A model generated the notes under the pieces. The model was given only the letters and a program-made list of their open reading frames with translations, had not been told where the DNA came from and did not search any database. Positions 4,872-20,820 of a DNA stretch of 64,000 nucleotides are shown here, in pieces. Both the position numbers and the translations under genes were made by a program. Origin of the DNA: Paragordius varius. Lineage: Eukaryota > Animalia > Nematomorpha. The DNA is taken from contig OZ176051.1 of assembly GCA_964247055.1 (NCBI GenBank), positions 7,936,001-8,000,000 on the forward strand. Reading direction: 5' to 3'. Numbering within the stretch: position 1 is the first letter of the stretch; every line of letters begins with the position of its first letter.

Positions 4872-7800
4872 ATGTATTTTAAAATTTTAAACTATATAGG
4901 TCTCACAATCTATATGTTAATTTATACTCTTTTCTCAAATACTCTTTACATTCCAAATAATATATCAGGACAGTTAGTACACTATATTATTCTCTCTATA
5001 TTAATCTCCTTTATAATATCTTGGTGGGGATATAAAAAGAAACATATATTATTTGATGCTGCGATTTTCGGTTGATTTTAAATGTTAATCTTTAGTTTTT
5101 TGGTTCGGATTTCTAATAAGTTTGTATTCGACATCAATCATGATGGCTTTAAGTACCTTTTTTATATGTGGTTCTATAGCTACTAAATTTAAATCAAGAT
5201 ACAAACTGCAATTTGATCCTGACTATCTAGGTAAAAACACTAAATAAAAATCTATTTGAAAAATATTAACTCAAATATACTATCAAACAAATACATAAGC
5301 ATTTTTTTATTTTTTTAAGAGATTATAATTTATCAAGAGTATCTAATTTTAACATTGAAAATATGAGACCAAATTTAGTATTATTTATTATCAAAGATAA
5401 TATATCCTTCCTTTCATTATGTGCTAGCGATCTATTTATGCTATAAGCTAATAGGTTACACCCTTAAATACCTAATTATTATAATGTATCGTGTTGGTAA
5501 TACATCAAATATTTAACTTCAATCCAACCATTCTACCGATATAAATCTGCCTGCGAAAATATAATATAATAAAAACTCTCAGTTGAAATAAAACTATGTT
5601 GGTTAAAAATACTAGCTCCCGAATTTTCTTAAATTTGTAACGATTTTTAATATCCGTTTTTAAACCAAATTTTAATCTTAATGTTAACACCTTAAAATTA
5701 AAAGTTTATAATATTAGGTGTAAAGGTAAAATTTAATTTTTTGCGGTCTTTTAGAAATAAAAATAACATAAGCAAACATATAAACTCTATTTTAAATATG
5801 CATTATGATAAATTATATGCAAAGATAAGGTTTGTAAAGCTAATGAACCGATTTATATTTTTTGAAACAAATCTATTTTCAGCCCTTTATAGGAAAATAA
5901 TCAATTGCTAGTGTTAAACTTAATAATTGAGGCGACAGATACATAAGCGTCCAATCAAAAATATTAATTAATAAGAAATAAGAAGGTAGACATGGCTAAA
6001 ATTAATAATTTTAACTCTTAATAATATCTTAATTTTTTAGCATATTCCATTAATATATCACAATTTCATAAATAAAATACATTGCTTGACCCATTGTTTG
6101 CTCTATTTTGCTTGAAAGTATTTGTTCATATATGACTTACTATCGTTCGGCAATCGAAACAATTTTATATAAGCATCAAAGGTAATTTCATCTTTATGCA
6201 AAAATTAAAGCGAATATAAGAGAGATAATAAGATTCGGATTTAAATTTTAAAAACCGGTTTCGGATGATCATTTCAATTTTTGACAAAACCGAAGACTGT
6301 TACATTTTTCTAAAAGCACCCTATCTATTTTCGAATTATAAGCTACAGTGTTACCTCTACTCTTTTTGGTTTAAAGCTCAAGTTGATACTTACGTGCATA
6401 TATTGTTTTGTTTTTAAAAAAATTGATAAGATATAATTGCCTTTTTTATAATTTTTACATTTATTTGGCAGATAAAAAACAACATAACGGACGCAATCTT
6501 GATCAAGTCTTATGTAATGGCGGTGTACCCGCTTTAATATCTCTCTATCAGCTCTTACGATACTTTTATTATCGTTCCAATTCATCTAGTGATCCTAATT
6601 ATGGCTACCAGTCAAGCGATAGTTTTTATGAATCAATCAAAAACCACAATAATAATAATAATGATAATATAAAAGCATTGATGATAAATGACTATCTATT
6701 TGCCATAATACCTATTGCATCTTACGTTGCTGCGTGTTGTGGTGATACATTGGCCTCCGAGTTGGCACCTATAACTTCCGTTTTTAACATTTTTTGCAAT
6801 GTTCAATTACGCAAAAATATCTTAAAAAATAAAGGGAATAATGACCTCCTTCTGTTAAATACTGAGAATAATGCAATCTATAATAAAGATGATGATAATA
6901 TTAGCAACAAAGTTTCCCTAGATACTCATAATTCTGTCGTTAATGGCCCCATTTTAATTACCACTGGTCAACCTGTACCATGCGGTATTTTAACTTTTTG
7001 GATAAATTTTGGATTATTTTGCAAAAAAAGGTAAAAGGCTATAAAAAAATTTCAAATTTTACAAAGACAGTAAGTAGTACGTTTAAACATTAATCAATGA
7101 TATTAAAGACGGACAGAAAATTAATCCTTAGCCTTATTTTTGTGTCCATTTTAAAATTTTAGCATTTGTTTAGTTGGATGGCGCTTAATTTTTGATAAAT
7201 AGTAGAGCAAGGATTAACAATAACGGGTGGGGTTGGTTTGATTATAAAATTTAGAAGTAAACGAGTCTGTTTTGTTCAATCAGCATAATTGAATCACAAA
7301 TTAAAATTTAAATATTTTGCGTTTATTTTAATTTTATGTCAATTGAGGTTCAGTACTAATTTGCGATTGTTAAATGATGTATAAATATGCAATATATATT
7401 TATGAGTATTGCATCATAAATCTCAAGAATTTTAACATTGGTAAATAAATTGTATCCTCATTAATAGGATTTTTTAATTAATTTATCTTAAAACAACTTT
7501 TTTTTCCAAAAGTTTCCCAATTAAATATAGGGTTCGGAAATTGTAACTCATTTTTGTAGGTCGAAATACATTGTCCGCTACATTTTGCGATCAATACAAT
7601 AAATCAAATATTAGATTTAGTTAGCAATTTTCTGATTGATTTTCTTTTTAATCGATAAGTGATAAATGATCAAAATACATAAAACGTATATTGGTCGATT
7701 TTTCTGGTTATATTTTGTTGCTTGTAAATGTAGTATAAAATTTTATTATATTGATTGCCGTATGAATATACTTTTTTTCCGGCAATTGTTTAGTAATTAT

Positions 7801-9202
7801 TAAATAAACGCAATAAAGAATAGTTTTTAAATTTATGATGTACTTTGTAATAAGTATGCTTATAATCACAAATATTGATATTTTAAAGATAGAGATCCTA
7901 TAATTTTACTTTAAAACCATAAAGAAAAGGTAAGAACTTAAATTTATTACCTTTAAACTTTTAACAATTATTTTTTTATCATAAATTAATTTTTAGGAAC
8001 TAATGGCGGTGTAACAGTTATAGGTTTGGCATACAGTGCCCTAAGTGGGTTGATTATAGGGTTTGCCCTAGTGTTGGGTGCTTACTTAAATTCAGAATGG
8101 AGTTTGTTTAGTACACAATCTGACCAAATAGACGGGATTTATTCACATTTTACATCCGCATTTTCAGGCAAACTAATTGGATTAATGACGTATTGTGGAC
8201 TTTTAGGGTCAATTATGGATTCGATTTTGGGTTCCTTGTTTCAATTTTCAGGTATTTTCAACGATATCAACTATTTTTTTTTGGTTTTTTTGTAATAAAT
8301 TATATGTGCTTACATTATAGAGTGAAACAAGAGGTTACCATAGATTGGTGTTAATATATATATGTACTTGTTTTATATTAATAATTTTTTGGCCCAATAT
8401 CTAATTTTTTCATGGCATTAAAATATTTAAAAAATAATACTAAAGCCTAATAATAGTTGTTTCCTCTCGTGCTTAAACTACACTTTATAAGAATTTTTCA
8501 TTTATTTAACCCTGAATGCTACTTCCTCCATTTTTCTTACCAGTTCGTTATACTATCAAATCAAAGCCATCCATGTTTTTAATAACCAAAAAAATAAACT
8601 TGTACATGATTTTTCCTATTAAAGAAAAAAAATAGACAGATAAAAATTATAGGACAAATATTTTTTAAAATAAACTATATTTTCAAATGTTAATTTTAAT
8701 AACTCGTCATTCCGTGTTGCAAAATAGGATTGTTAAACACTATATAATTTAAAGTTATTAAAATTTGGTATGGTTGTCTTTTTAAAAATATTTTTACGTT
8801 TTGTCTGTTTTTACTGTATATATATGGTGTTAAATTACATGTGCTTATACAAAAATCCGGAATATATAGGAAATATAAGTTTTAATTTTTTTGATAATTA
8901 ATTACTTTTTTATATTTATAGGAATAAATACAGAGACTGGAAATATGGTTAATTTTTACTCCGAGGAAGTCTCAAAAGATCCATCATTATCCATCTATCA
9001 AAATAATGATAAAATTAACAAAAATAATAGAAATTTTAAGACTGATAAATTGAGTTCTTGTCACGGACACATGAATAAATCTAATGATAAAGTTTTAGTT
9101 TTAACCAATAGCTTACCCATCCTCGATAATAATAATGTAAATCTTATTTCAGCCAGTATAACATCTTTCATCGGTTTAGCCATAGCCTATACAATATTTT
9201 AA
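4872..9202 (+). CDS. TMEM19: Transmembrane protein 19 (DUF92 family), 5 exons, ~460 aa
   Basis: Exons 4872-5070, 5096-5230, 6472-6984, 7997-8251, 8922-9202, all GT-AG and in frame (1383 nt). Motifs GRNLDQVLCNGG, GDTLASE, PCGTNGGVT, GLLGSIMDSILGS and PILDNNNVNL match TMEM19. First intron is 25 nt. Confidence 0.9.
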
Positions 9203-10075: not shown

Positions 10076-10990
10076 TCGTAGCTAGAAAGAGGTCATTGTT
10101 TACAAATTGGAATTGCGGCCGATTGCTTGGGATTATATCCATTTCAAAATACGTTTGAAAAGCAAGTTCATATGAAATTTTTTTACAATATTCATATACA
10201 TCATTTTCATATACGGTATGATTAAGGCGATTGTTTTACAATTTGCATGCCTTTGCAAATCAAGAGACTATTTCGGTGTCCCTGACCTATGGAATTGCCT
10301 TTCTGGGCTTACGGAGTTCCATCCCCGCTTACATATATTACAAATTGGTTGTTTCTAGCAACTGGTTATAGCGCCAGATAAACCCGCTTTATCATCTGTG
10401 TGAATGCAGGTATTGTGGTATTTTATAGGAAAAAATTATGGTAATTATCTTTTTCCACCACACCCCACACAGATGATTTCTTTCCTTGCCGCTCCCGTTG
10501 GTATTAACCAGGGTGCACCACGCGGAGGTGGTCGGACTTTAATAAACACATATCAGCAAAAAACAAAGGTTTGATTTACAAAGCCGGCATACGTCCCATA
10601 CTCCTGTATGGTTGCGAAACGTGGCCGATGACAGATTCAATCGAGAAAAAACTAATGAACTTAGAAAAACGGATTCTAAATTTATTCCAACTCAATAAGT
10701 CAAATTCAAATTTACATCAACTCTACCAAATTGAACCTTTAAATGTCATGCTCAGAAAAAATAGGCTTAGATATTTCGGACACATCAAACGTGCTCCAGA
10801 ACAATGGACAAATAAAATTTTATCCCTACATCCCGAAGGTAACAATCGCAGGGGCAGACCAACATTCAACTGGGAAAAAACAATAAATAATGATTTAAGT
10901 GTTGCCAACATTGATGATGACGCCTGGCAGGATCGCAAATATTACAGACAGCTTCTATACGGATACAATGGCTAGCCATTGCACAAAGAC
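9700..10990. mobile_element. Degenerate RTE-like non-LTR retrotransposon with an inverted 5' part
   Basis: Plus-strand ORF 10571..10975 (RPILLYGCETW...RLRYFGHIKR...RRGRP..W) is the RTE C-terminal region. The minus strand at ~10250-9950 reads NCKTIALIIPYMK and DYADDFIF (RT motifs). Ends approximate. Confidence 0.75.
10017..10070. repeat. (TA)27 microsatellite
   Basis: Perfect TA run interrupting the RT remnant. Shorter TA runs lie near 12890, 21560, 23760, 36980 and 37640. Confidence 0.98.
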
Positions 10991-12088: not shown

Positions 12089-12883
12089 ATGATATCGAAT
12101 TGTCTCTTTTGGTTGCTCGCATTTCTTTCTTTCGTGTCGGTTATTCAAGTTGCAGAAGGTAAATTTAAAAGCTAATATATATTTAACCCAATTAATTTGG
12201 TCATTTATTTACACTTACTATTTTTTAAAAAATTATTCTCTTGGTTTAAATTATTAAATTTTTGGCATGAAATAGATATCCCATGGCCTGATTTTTCAAG
12301 TAAAAATTACTTTATAACCCAAATAGAGCACTATATATTGATATAAAAATTAAATATTCATAATACCATTTCTTAAATTCAAGGAATCTGTATATATTTA
12401 AATAAACTCCCCAATATAAAAGTAAAATTTACGATTTAAATTTGGCTGAGAAGGTTTCACTGGAACTAAAATTGAAAAATTTATTTATGAATTTTCTGTA
12501 AGTGTGATGGTATAAAATAGGTAAGGCGCCATATACTATGCATGTGACAGAGTTTATATATTGAAATTATACATTTTTCTAACAGTGTCCGCCATGTGCA
12601 GTCGGGTCATTAAGTTTTCAAAAGTCCTGAATGACACAACTCAAGTTTCATAAAAGAAAAAGAATAAAGAGACTTTAATTAATATTTTTATTATAAATTT
12701 TCCATATTTATAACAAATAATACCTATTTTGCTCTATCTTAAAAAACATAGTTAAGATTCGTCTATGAAATCGGGGCTTGTTACATGAAAAACCCTGCAT
12801 CAAATTTGTTTGAATTGCGTGAATGATTATCCTGGGTTTTCAACACAAACGGCGCCGCATTTTGACTCAAAAAATTCGGCGGA

Positions 12884-12915
<32 letters not shown>

Positions 12916-13892
12916 GGCTTCTATGATTAATATTATTTCACGCTAAGATGAGCTATATAAAGCACACTTTAAAACTAATCAATTACCTTAAATTAATTTA
13001 TTGTTTCCTATTATTAATTTCAAGAAATTCAAAATATAATGGTGCCCATTTCGCCTATATAAATTAAATATGAATCTTTACAAAAATTATCGCATAAAAC
13101 TATTATACTTAATTTAAAAAACTTAGGTGATGAATTATATCAAGTAATATTTCACGTCTGGAAAATTAATGTATAAATATAGAAAAAATAAATGGGATTT
13201 TCGCGCATATTTATGATCCCCTTTGGAATCAAAAAATCTGACAGATATTTTAAAATTTTTTACATATTTTCTGACAAAATTATCATAATTATGTGTTTTT
13301 TGACCAAATTTACATTTATATGAAAAATATTTAATTTTAAGGTTCAAAAACCCTTAGATCAAGGAAGTTATTGTATAAAATTAAAAAAAGAATATATAAA
13401 TTTATATATATATTATATATATGTTTAGGATCTAAAATAAAAATAAATTAATTTTATGGTTGAAAATATCTACTCTGGGATAGTAAAGCCTTAACCTTTA
13501 TTAGTTAATAAAATTTATACAATACATTTATCGCAGGTAATACAAAATATAGCTCATCCTAATTATTTTATAGTAACTATTCTACCAACTGTAATTTTTA
13601 AAATACCTAATTAACTTTTCCAACATTTTACCTGATGATCTATAATTATAAAAACAGATATAAATTTTAAATTCATGAATTTTATTATGCATTAAACTTT
13701 TCGTTAGGGAGGAACAATTGTGAAAAATATGGCCTTTCCTGTTTAGGTGGTTGGAAACGAAGCGGTAATAATGGTTATCAGGAATCTTTTCGTCAAAGAA
13801 GAAAATTTATGCCAAATTTGGAACGTTTTTCCAACGCAAGAGATAATATGGATTATCCTGGATGGATGGCACCACCGTACTATGAACGTTAA
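12089..13892 (+). CDS. Neuropeptide precursor, CCHamide/excitatory-peptide-like, 84 aa, 2 exons
   Basis: Exon 12089-12158 encodes a hydrophobic signal peptide (MISNCLFWLLAFLSFVSVIQVAE). A phase-1 GT-AG intron leads to exon 13708-13892 (GRNNCEKYGLSCLGGW-KR-SGNNG...YYER*). C-x6-C ring with YGxSCxGG followed by KR; AATAAA near 14026. Confidence 0.75.
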
Positions 13893-15169
13893 TCAAATAA
13901 TTGATATTTTACTATTATACTAATTTATTTAAAATACAATTAATAAGCCATTTCATGATATCGATATTATTATATTTACATTTGTAATTCTGTTTTTCAT
14001 GCTGTACATATTACACTTAGTAATCAATAAATAAATGCGTCTTTTAAATATCTATAGTGATTAAAAAATTAGAGTGATTAATATTATAACTACTCAAATA
14101 TAGGATTAGCTTTTCATGTGAAATAACCGGTCAGAATGTTTATGAATATAGTAACTAGTGCTCATGACCATTATTTACTTTGGACTTGGTGAAGTAACTA
14201 AATAAAATACTACATCCTATTAAATTCTTTTTAATAATGGTAATTAAAAATTTAGTTTTAAATTTTTTAAAGAAAATTTCACCTGTTTTCATAGTCTAAA
14301 AAATCAAGGTCACCTTAAGGGAAAAAACTCAGAAAGTGTCTCCCCCCTTAACTCACTATATAGAATGCTTGTAAAATTTCAAAATGAGTAAAACATTGAG
14401 AAAGATTATTGTTTTATAAAAAAATTTATAGCTTACGCATATATGAGCTCGCGTAGGGCGTTAAAAAATGACAGATTTTTAATAATCAAAAGTACTAATA
14501 AAATTTTATGGTAATTAATGTAAGTTTTTAATTGGCTCCTTTACTATTTGTATTAAAAACACATATTCCAATTATATGGATAAATCATGACATACAAATA
14601 TTATTAAAATTAGACCTAATATTTTATTATTTTGCTACAAATACTAATTAGTGATCAGTGTTTAGCGTATTTTACACAAAATTAAAAATTTTCAAAATTG
14701 TAAACACCCTCTTAAGCTAATTTTAGGAAGCACATTTTTAGTTTTATTTAAAGACAAGCTGGTCCTGTCACGCCTCGCTGTGATGTAATATCACTGATAA
14801 TTATTCTTAATAATTTGCAATAAATAGAGGTAATGGAGATAAAAAAATAATAAAAACATATTAAATAAAAAAATGTCTTTAATTATTCTTTTACGGGTTT
14901 TTGCATAGGCTTAAATATTGTGTACTTGAAATTGACCATATTTAAACGTGCCTTATTAAAGTTAATATTCAACCATCATTGGATTTATTTTAACATTTTT
15001 GTTTCACGAAATCGTGGCTAAAAGTTTTATTCTGAAATTGTGTTCACACTGGGATCAAGGGATATATAAAGTAATTTGGGGTTCCACATGTAGAAGAATG
15101 ATATTATACAAATTCCCTAGAAATGTTTAACTGAACTCGTATAGCTACTTAAGTTTTTTAAAATAAGCT

Positions 15170-17898: not shown

Positions 17899-20820
17899 TT
17901 ATAATTCTTCGTTAGGTCTGAAAGTGCGTTTGTGAAAACCAAAGTCACCAAATTTTTGCATGTCATATATTGGTTCAGGATCTGTTATATCTTCCACCTA
18001 AAAACCATTACACAGACATATATATATGTAAAAATGGAACGCGATAAAATATAAATTAATTAAAAATTATGTGTGTAAATTATGAAAATATTTTTTTAAT
18101 TAAAATTAATCTGAGTAACAATAAAATAAAATATAACCAAATGACTTTCATTAATACAATTACACTTTATATAGATATATATATATGTGTGTGTGTTAAA
18201 TTACTTCATAGCGATTTTTTTGTCCCATGACCACATCAAAACCCAACAGACCGTCATCCCAAAACTATTAATTAAAAAATAAAATTAATTATTTTTTCTG
18301 AAATTATTAAATATCCATTACCTACATTTTAACAATTACATAAGTTTGCATATATATTTATTGATAAAAAAATTGCTTAAATTTTTTTAGTTGACATTAA
18401 GCAATAAATATTCTATGTTAAATCTTTTTTTAAATCTAAATTTAATTTTATTATATTTTAAAAAAATATATTTTTTAAATTATACCCAATGTCCATGAGA
18501 CAACATATATACCATTAAAAGAATGCCAAAATAGACGTGTAGAGTGGCAGACACGATCATTCTTATGTTTTGGGCGACAGTAACACCCTAGTTAATAGCA
18601 ATAAAATTTTCAACAATGAAAATACAAATATATATAAAGAGTTAAATCAATTCATTATGGTAAATATTTTAGAGTAAAACCAATTAGAATTCAACGTTAA
18701 TTTTGGCGAAATATAAGATTTACAGTTGAGGGGTTATTATTAGTTTAAGTTGATATTATTGAATGATCAATAATCATTATTACTTGTTTAAAAGTAAAGT
18801 AGCCCCTCTATTACTTAACTTTTTAAAACAGCGCCTCTAAACTATCCTTACATTAAATTCTTAAAGTTGACACAAAAGTGGTATGTTTTCAAATTTAAAA
18901 AATAGGGGATCATTATAAGGGGGTAATGGATAAACTTTTAATTTTAACTGGATTAATGGATACGCCAAATAAGCGTATTATATCATTTCAAAAACCATAT
19001 TTGCAATCTTTAAATTTTTACCGATTCGAAACTTTAAATTCTCACGGTCAGCTTTATAATTTTTGACATAATTACTTTAACTATGTTAACAAATAATTAA
19101 TTAATTTATAGTAACGATATATGTAGAAAATTCGTTTGACCCATGCCCAAAAATAGGAATGGGAGTCGAAAATTTCACCTGTTTTTATTTTGTGGTTGAA
19201 ATTAATATGTATTGTCTAAACTCTACCTGCCAAAATCACAATTAAGTCAAATGCTTTTTTTACAAGGTCCAAATTTTAAACAGTCAAATATCTAATGACT
19301 CTACTAATCAATAAAAAGTACCGATTTTACAACCTTTATGCCACATTTATCGTTTATATTGTCAATCCTCCGTTATGGTTTTTTTAGTAAATATTTTTAG
19401 TCCATATCTTCCCCAACCCTAGGTCAAGAATTACTGCATTTAGCAAATATGTACCAAATGGTAAAAAATATTTTATTTTAGCGAATTGGAATTATTATTT
19501 ATTCTTAATCTAAATCGCGAAATAACAAAAAGTGACGGTTTAAAACCGCGGTTTATTTTCTTTAAAACTTTATTTAACTTTTATAAACTTATCCTTATAA
19601 AAATTAATGGCTAATGTATAATATCGTTGGTTGTCAAATGTTATCAACAAATAAAATGATCTAATCAACTTTTCTAACCATGTCAAATTTATATCATAAA
19701 AAATTAAAAAATATTCCCAAATTTCTTTTAGTATATCTACGGTTTTAATTGCATTAAAAGTAATTGTTATCAAAAATATAGTAAGGTGAAGATGGTATAG
19801 GAACCAGAACTACCTCAGATTTTAAGAGGAAACGGTCATAGAATAAAGCCAGTTAGATCTGGCATACTATTTCAAGAATTACGTTGGATGCAAAAACCAA
19901 ATTATTTTCGGACATGCTTAAAGTCTACTAATTAATTCTTTTTACTATTATGATATTATTTTTTTTAATTTTTTTTGAACCTAGTTGTAAAACTTTGGTA
20001 GTTACTTATAAAGTTTAATGACACAATGTTGTTTCGTTTTAACTCCATATATTTTTTATGATTATAAATGTTATGTTTAAATATTTGCAATTAATTATTC
20101 CGGTTAAGCCAAATTTTTCATTCTCTAAAAATTATGCATCTTCCTTGCTTTTGGAGAGAAAAAACGGTTAATATTACAAATGGTGCAACGATTATTATTT
20201 TGTGCCTATTTTTCTGCTAGCAAATACTTAACGTTGAGAAAAATGAGCCATATTTTATCTTAAATACCTAATTAGAACAAAATTATAACCACATTTACAA
20301 CTATAACATATAATTAGTTTTACCACAATAGGAGCGATGGATGCTGCTAATAGATTCAAAGGAAATTTGTATATTCTACGAAAAATGTTGGTATAAAATT
20401 TGTGTAATTCTGGAACCATAACTGGTTCGAAATCTTTTAATTCTTGATCCTTTTGCCATTGAAGTCGCCATTTACGTTCAGCCTCGGTCATACCTACGTT
20501 ATTACGTTATATAAACCTAAAACACGCTCCCTTTCATACATATGACGTCCTTGTAAAGTCATTGAAAGATCAGTTCTGTAACTAGGAAGTCGTTTATATA
20601 ATGGATCAAGTGGATCCTTAACTTCCATCTCATTGTTTTCATTTATTTTGACATTTGGATGATTCTTCCATTTTTCAATATCAAAACAGTCAGATGAATT
20701 AATCTTTGGAATTTTAGGATCTTTTTCTTTATTTAACAAAGAAAATAAATCCGGTTTTGCCTGCGGTTTGTTAGTGTAATGCCTTAAATTTGTTTTTAAG
20801 AGAGCAAGCCTGAACCACAT
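17899..20820 (-). CDS. NDUFB6: NADH:ubiquinone oxidoreductase subunit B6 (B17), 5 exons, ~244 aa
   Basis: Exons 20820-20517, 20493-20324, 18587-18486, 18264-18205, 17997-17899 (735 nt, in frame). ERERVLG/MTEAERKWRLQWQKDQEL...EPV, NIFRRIYKFPL, a single TM helix and C-terminal KFGDFGFHKRTF match invertebrate B17. Intron 1 is 23 nt. Confidence 0.88.

Follow-up and report, generated by a model that had tools for sequence, protein, structure and literature searches.

The 64,000-nucleotide stretch of contig OZ176051.1 analyzed here (positions 7,936,001 to 8,000,000; hereafter the window) carries a small two-exon gene on its plus strand, at 12089-13892, that reads as the precursor of a cyclic secreted peptide. 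We consider it probably a real, single-copy member of the excitatory peptide (EP)/CCHamide family in an AT-rich ecdysozoan, probably a nematomorph, encoding an 84-residue prepropeptide whose product would be a free acid and would likely act through the sole CCHamide-type G protein-coupled receptor (GPCR) of the same genome.

The gene can be read directly from the DNA letters. Exon 1 opens with an ATG at 12089-12091, preceded by an A at -3, and translates as MISNCLFWLLAFLSFVSVIQVAE followed by a single base g at 12158, with CLFWLLAFLSFVSVI forming the hydrophobic core of the predicted signal peptide. Exon 2, of which the genome holds one copy, begins with gg, completing a Gly codon, and continues as RNNCEKYGLSCLGGWKRSGNNGYQESFRQRRKF...PPYYER up to a stop codon at 13890-13892, so that the order after the junction is RNNCEKYGLSCLGGW-KR-SGNNGYQESFRQRRKF...YYER. 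This is the arrangement proposed in a preliminary description of the locus, in which a signal peptide was said to be followed directly by a cyclic peptide and Lys-Arg, and the letters bear it out at the same coordinates. Splicing would join 12158 to 13708, the junction put forward in that description and the sole one that preserves the frame, as use of the next AG (13710-11) leads to an early stop. The gene was also said to be missed by the open reading frame (ORF) track, and indeed the standard list contains only an out-of-frame ORF at 13747..13923. This shows that small spliced peptide genes escape ORF-based annotation in this genome.

The observation of a peptide gene is thus confirmed, and judged from the DNA alone a chance origin appears very unlikely. 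A DNA pattern search of the 110.6-Mb genome with the strict motif C-x2-[YF]-G-x2-C-x-G-[GA] returned two matches, one of them in an open frame at the present locus and the other interrupted by TAA at the second codon. With the pattern reversed as a control, the genome yielded no match, and from base composition we estimate about 0.2 occurrences of the strict motif per genome. With a looser motif lacking the aromatic residue, 10 matches were found genome-wide compared with 11 in the control, none of them precursor-like. Composition also sets the exons apart, with G+C contents of 38.6% in exon 1 and 38.4% in exon 2, 23.4% in the intron, 29-31% in the 2-kb flanks and about 26% in the window. The frame of exon 2 stays open for 73 codons, compared with a median open segment of 8 codons in the window, where only 6% of codon positions sit in open segments as long. 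Signal-peptide-like phase-1 exons starting with ATG number about five per 64-kb strand under a crude hydrophobicity rule, and the exon at 12089 is the only one of them between 9000 and 13708.

Thiel et al. 2019 (PMC6617912) compiled EP/CCHamide precursors from the protostomes, a single nematomorph among them. Members carry two cysteines and usually an amidated C terminus on a peptide present in one copy directly after the signal peptide; the ring contains an aromatic residue and often a His, GG or GA stands between the second Cys and the C terminus, and in ecdysozoans the two cysteines lie six residues apart, whereas the precursor tails are not conserved across the family (PMC6617912). In the window gene, six residues separate the cysteines (C28-EKYGLS-C35), Tyr31-Gly32 lies in the ring, Gly37-Gly38 follows Cys35, and, given the splicing proposed above, a single peptide stands directly after the signal peptide with KR right behind it. 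In addition, the same genome encodes an EP/CCHamide-type receptor, which belongs to the bombesin/endothelin-related GPCRs. All features listed by Thiel et al. 2019 are therefore present except amidation, since Trp39 runs straight into Lys-Arg without a Gly, and the "often" found ring His, whose position is taken by Leu33. The assignment to the CCHamide family made in the preliminary description is upheld by this motif, the precursor layout and the presence of the receptor gene. Amidation is a typical rather than a strictly defining trait of the family, because exceptions have been published in the tardigrade Milnesium and in the earthworm GGNG peptides; a 2026 paper notes that the purified earthworm peptides are non-amidated, while amidation is otherwise called highly conserved in the family.

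We compared the window peptide with published peptides by eye. The relevant sequences, all from supplement 1 of PMC6617912, are ...KNKCTMFGHSCLGGF-GKR in Paragordius, SCEAYGQSCLGGF-GKR in Halicryptus, SCAAYGQSCLGGF-GKR in Priapulus, DCLSYGHACLGGL-GKR in Armorloricus and GCALWGQSCLGGHF-KKR in Milnesium. By this comparison, SCEAYGQSCLGGF from a priapulid and NKCTMFGHSCLGGF from the nematomorph Paragordius come closest. The window sequence NCEKYGLSCLGGW-KR has C-E-x-Y-G-x-S-C-L-G-G in common with Halicryptus paralogue 3 (9/12 positions), and with Paragordius it shares G-x-S-C-L-G-G followed by an aromatic residue. The published Paragordius varius precursor (Pvar.Gene.19198; PMC6617912) likewise consists of a signal peptide and then one peptide with a C-x6-C ring, an aromatic residue and a Gly within the ring, an Asn two residues ahead of the first Cys, and S-C-L-G-G leading to an aromatic residue and a dibasic site. 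However, it keeps the ring His, ends in Phe-Gly-Lys-Arg (a predicted Phe-amide) and has a longer tail that is unrelated to that of the window gene. A strict-motif search of the 110.6-Mb genome found no copy of the published Paragordius-type peptide.

The ring His is also absent, being replaced by Gln, from Halicryptus spinulosus 03 and Priapulus caudatus 02, SC(E/A)AYGQSCLGGF-amide, but in these the amidation Gly is retained and the last residue is Phe. Milnesium tardigradum resembles the window peptide in having no C-terminal amidation Gly, no ring His and an S-C-L-G-G core, and differs in having five residues after the second Cys, a Phe end and a spacer between signal peptide and peptide. 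It is the only other ecdysozoan member reported without the amidation Gly, the remaining published taxa having G-K-R at this place (PMC6617912). Arthropod CCHamide-1 and -2 share the ring size, the ring Y-G, G-[GA] after the second Cys and the precursor layout with the window gene, yet have a ring His and a C-terminal His-amide. The preliminary description measured novelty against these arthropod peptides, a baseline that proves too narrow. Only arthropods and onychophorans have a C-terminal His, the last residue of the known nematomorph, priapulid and loriciferan peptides being F, M or L, and the position of the ring His is Gln or Asn in priapulids, a tardigrade and Daphnia (PMC6617912). Loss of the His and loss of amidation are thus already known elsewhere, which makes the window peptide less novel than that description implied. 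What appears new, from the sequences compared, is Leu at the ring His/Gln/Asn position and a predicted terminal free-acid Trp. Host mimicry, by which the peptide of a parasite would act on insect CCHamide receptors, was set aside, as the window peptide has diverged from the arthropod consensus in lacking both the His and the amide.

The lack of an amidation signal probably does not reflect a general loss of the machinery. A search with PF03712 identified two copper type II monooxygenase genes in the genome. One, at G000:C4:12375554-12376655 (+), has only PAM/PHM among its PDB matches and is likely the peptide-amidating enzyme, and the other, at G000:C4:4195718-4195876 (-), matches dopamine beta-hydroxylase; a search of the genome with PF01082 gave no match. 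Amidation is therefore probably available in this animal, and since a PHM gene is present the missing Gly would be specific to this precursor rather than a sign of genome-wide amidation loss.

The preliminary description had called for a search of the genome for a CCHamide/BRS3-type GPCR, and one such gene was found. The motif N-S-C-x-N-P-x-x-L-Y of transmembrane segment (TM) 7, derived from the receptor alignment in the supplement of PMC6617912, has one open-frame match genome-wide, which lies in a single-exon ORF of 817 aa at G000:C5:8832562-8835015 (-) (L048:2562-5015 (-)). For TM1-4, the best solved relatives in a PDB search are BRS3, GRPR and NMBR, and among named proteins the CCHamide-1 receptors of Blattella (51% identity, E 6e-44), Schistocerca and Tetranychus come closest. 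Resemblance to the Priapulus receptor shown in PMC6617912 is close as well. DRY, CWLP, NSCINPIALY (NPxxY) and the Cys pair linking TM3 and extracellular loop (ECL) 2 are intact; relative to insect, mite and metagenome relatives, inserts of roughly 90 aa in ECL2 and 250 aa in intracellular loop 3 are present. The two paralogues that rank next in the genome, 41% and 36% identical to the receptor, look galanin/allatostatin-A-like by motif in our reading, and on this ground the receptor is regarded as single-copy. The genome would accordingly contain one candidate ligand and one receptor of CCHamide type.

Several other receptor loci were encountered in these searches. Galanin/allatostatin-A-like GPCRs, recognized by TM2-TM3 motifs, lie at G000:C5:2320608-2321000 (+) and G000:C5:12872901-12873386 (-), in open frames of 573+ and 785+ aa with long loops. 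The TM3 motif CK[LIV][LIV]PF[LIV]Q led instead to a CCK/sulfakinin-type receptor and was dropped; its second match is a chance occurrence in retrotransposon DNA. The CCK/sulfakinin-type receptor gene is multi-exon (G000:C1:9943217-9947541 (-); L044), its TM1-3 exon having CCK-A and CCK-B receptors as best PDB matches, and directly upstream of it, at 9947881-9949425 of the same strand, there is an ORF of 515 aa that is rich in Pro, Gln and Val and has a signal-like start.

A number of observations weigh against assigning the window gene to the EP/CCHamide family. Membership rests on a 13-residue motif and on architecture, both compared by eye with published sequences, and the signal peptide is called by a rule of thumb, with a probability of about 0.1 that a signal-like exon would occur by chance within 1.6 kb upstream. 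With exon 2 as query, a word-based protein search gave no relative, all ESM Atlas hits scored <0.9 and belonged to unrelated families, none of the 220 pattern matches in a metagenome scan was confirmed, and an exhaustive HMMER search returned only P0001 and P0002, both repeat proteins. Finally, the absence of amidation, a feature called highly conserved in the family, could mark decay of the gene. A Pfam scan with exon 2 and a literature search for the peptide string likewise gave no match. Significant homology between precursors is not expected, because the conserved core comprises 13 residues and the tails are unconserved. P0001 and P0002 were rejected as relatives, their scores being spurious sums of weak repeat matches (RCLGGWERH..., CQRFGMKVLGEWK...). 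In P0001 (2550 aa), a unit of roughly 85 residues (...RCLGGWERHRRQEEKETF...) is repeated in tandem about 30 times, and summed repeats alone gave an E value of 8e-12 against a 60-aa query, which calls for caution with short queries.

These observations leave three other explanations to be considered. The motif, a hydrophobic ATG exon and splice sites could coincide in AT-rich DNA without any gene being there, as the lack of homologues in every sequence search might suggest and as the frequency of signal-like exons and AATAAA hexamers at this composition would allow. We find this hardly credible, given that the strict motif is seen once in frame against the roughly 0.2 expected and none in the control, that it is followed directly by an aromatic residue and KR and preceded directly by an in-phase acceptor, that an exon for a signal peptide is located no more than 1.6 kb upstream, that the exons exceed the intron by 15 points of G+C, and that the genome encodes a cognate receptor. 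Alternatively, the gene could encode a real secreted peptide of another C-x6-C family, of the allatostatin-C type or specific to the lineage, with a convergent likeness to CCHamides. No separate allatostatin-C gene was recognized in the genome, where a pattern search for it gave only chance-like or repeat matches, and the peptide is too short for sequence searches to prove homology. Allatostatin-C has a six-residue disulfide ring as well, but its core is C-[YA]-F-N-x-x-[ST]-C-F, with a single residue behind the second Cys, and it sits at the C-terminal end of its precursor. The window peptide instead has the ring EKYGLS without the F-N core, four residues (L-G-G-W) rather than one Phe past the second Cys, and a place directly behind the signal peptide. 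These features speak against clustering with allatostatin-C, named in the preliminary description as an outcome that would overturn its reading, and membership in another family would moreover leave the CCHamide-type receptor with no other candidate ligand in the genome. We regard this explanation as very improbable.

A formerly amidated CCHamide gene could also be decaying as selection relaxes in a parasite that has less need of signaling, leaving a weak or inactive product. The losses of the Gly codon and the ring His fall on features called highly conserved or frequent, and the receptor has large loop inserts and departs from six relatives at 19/87 otherwise invariant positions. However, the ligand gene shows no damage in its start codon, signal peptide, splice sites, two cysteines, YG/SC/GG core or dibasic site, the receptor frame is open over 817 codons (the median segment being 8 codons) with DRY, CWLP and NPxxY kept, and non-amidated family members are known in other taxa. 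Decay thus seems unlikely to us, and a real EP/CCHamide gene remains the preferred explanation.

For such a gene the following processing can be proposed. The signal peptide would be removed after Gly24, the A-E-G ending obeying the -3/-1 rule; a prohormone convertase would cut after Lys40-Arg41 and a carboxypeptidase would trim both basic residues; and Cys28 and Cys35 would close the six-residue disulfide ring. As no Gly stands ahead of the dibasic site, the terminal Trp of the 15-residue product RNNCEKYGLSCLGGW would keep its alpha-carboxylate free and carry no amide, in agreement with the free-acid peptide predicted in the preliminary description. This product would most likely signal via the sole CCHamide/EP-type class A GPCR of the genome. 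Insect CCHamides are brain-gut peptides and spiralian EPs excite gut muscle or cilia.

The preliminary description further suggested that the receptor had co-evolved with its divergent ligand, and here the evidence is no more than suggestive. An alignment with six other CCHamide-type receptors contains 87 gap-free columns in which those six fully agree, and the receptor found here departs from them in 19. Among the differences, with Arg146 taken as 3.50, are Gln in place of Glu at 3.29, Thr in place of Asp at 3.33 and, right behind the ECL2 Cys, C-H-P-H-P in place of C-Y-P-F-P; Glu3.29, Asp3.33 and C-Y-P-[FY]-P are found in the Priapulus and chelicerate receptors of PMC6617912 as well. A negatively charged ligand C terminus would be repelled by Glu3.29 and Asp3.33, and neutralization of both positions therefore fits co-evolution. 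The support is weak, however: under random placement of the changes, the probability that both are altered is already about 0.05. A parallel is offered by the vertebrate endothelins and their receptors ETA and ETB, a sister branch within the same receptor group. Endothelins are also disulfide-constrained peptides with a free-acid Trp end, although they have four cysteines, 21 residues and a different precursor and are made via big-endothelin. IRL2500 mimics the C terminus of endothelin-1 (ET-1); when bound to ETB, its Trp moiety contacts Pro3.29 among others, and its carboxylate, superimposing on that of ET-1 Trp21, is bound by Lys3.33 and Arg6.55. Two of these positions, 3.29 and 3.33, are altered in the receptor found here. 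However, neither 3.33 nor 6.55 has acquired a Lys or Arg in it, which weakens the co-evolution reading. The endothelin resemblance is best read as a parallel and gives no sign of membership. That ligand and receptor switched together from amide to carboxylate recognition, as the free-acid Trp, E3.29Q, D3.33T and the two His gained in ECL2 might indicate, is a tentative idea that we hold to be possible but on balance doubtful.

The coordinates of the gene and its parts are collected in the table below. The propeptide S42-R84 showed no similarity to other precursors in protein and domain searches, in keeping with a family whose tails are unconserved. The AATAAA hexamers constitute weak evidence for a polyadenylation signal, being frequent in DNA of 25% G+C.

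Table. Features of the putative EP/CCHamide gene, in window coordinates
Feature	Position	Strand	Details
Exon 1	12089..12158	+	Start codon and predicted signal peptide, M1-E23, plus first base of the Gly24 codon
Intron, phase 1, 1549 bp	12159..13707	+	Donor G|GTAAAT at 12159-12160; acceptor ttttcgttAG| at 13706-13707
Exon 2	13708..13892	+	Last two Gly24 bases, predicted mature peptide, processing sites, C-terminal propeptide, stop
Predicted mature peptide RNNCEKYGLSCLGGW, R25-W39	13710..13754	+	Translation; motif match to the EP/CCHamide list, PMC6617912 supplement 1
Predicted C-x6-C disulfide	Cys28 (13719-21) and Cys35 (13740-42)	+	Translation
Predicted Lys-Arg prohormone-convertase site, no Gly before	13755..13760	+	Letters tgg aaa cga
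C-terminal propeptide S42-R84	13761..13889	+	43-residue tail; inner multibasic R-Q-R-R-K at 13791-13805
Two overlapping AATAAA hexamers	14026..14035	+	About 135 nt past the stop; possible polyadenylation signal

Within the intron we observe a (TA)n run at about 12888-12916 and, next to it, an island of higher G+C at window positions 12500-12900. This island has one weak match on another contig (140 nt, 70% identical, C6:2924366-2924506) and is probably an old repeat; an Rfam scan of the intron matched no family. Elsewhere in the window, a TMEM19/DUF92-family gene with at least two or three exons and an Asn-rich insert occupies 6408-9202 (+), its only relatives in a word search being two Gordionus proteins at 33% identity. 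An ORF at 10571-10975 (+) resembles the C-terminal end of a non-LTR retrotransposon reverse transcriptase, without a Pfam match, and similar retroelement ORFs are present in L045. Finally, an exon of a homologue of NDUFB6, a complex I subunit, lies at 20255-20491 (-), beside a 108-aa ORF (20494-20820) that has no Pfam match.

The gene described here is an odd member of a known hormone system and does not reveal a new one. Neuropeptide repertoires of Nematomorpha are almost unknown, with one hairworm CCHamide-type peptide, that of Paragordius, found in the library searched; the window gene adds a second one with unusual chemistry, lacking the ring His and predicted to end in a free-acid Trp. 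Together, the ligand and its single candidate receptor would form a compact pair for testing the need for C-terminal amidation in the CCHamide/bombesin/endothelin superfamily. If the joint switch of ligand and receptor is true, the pair would represent a natural experiment in the interconversion of amidated (bombesin/CCHamide) and free-acid (endothelin) ligand chemistries.

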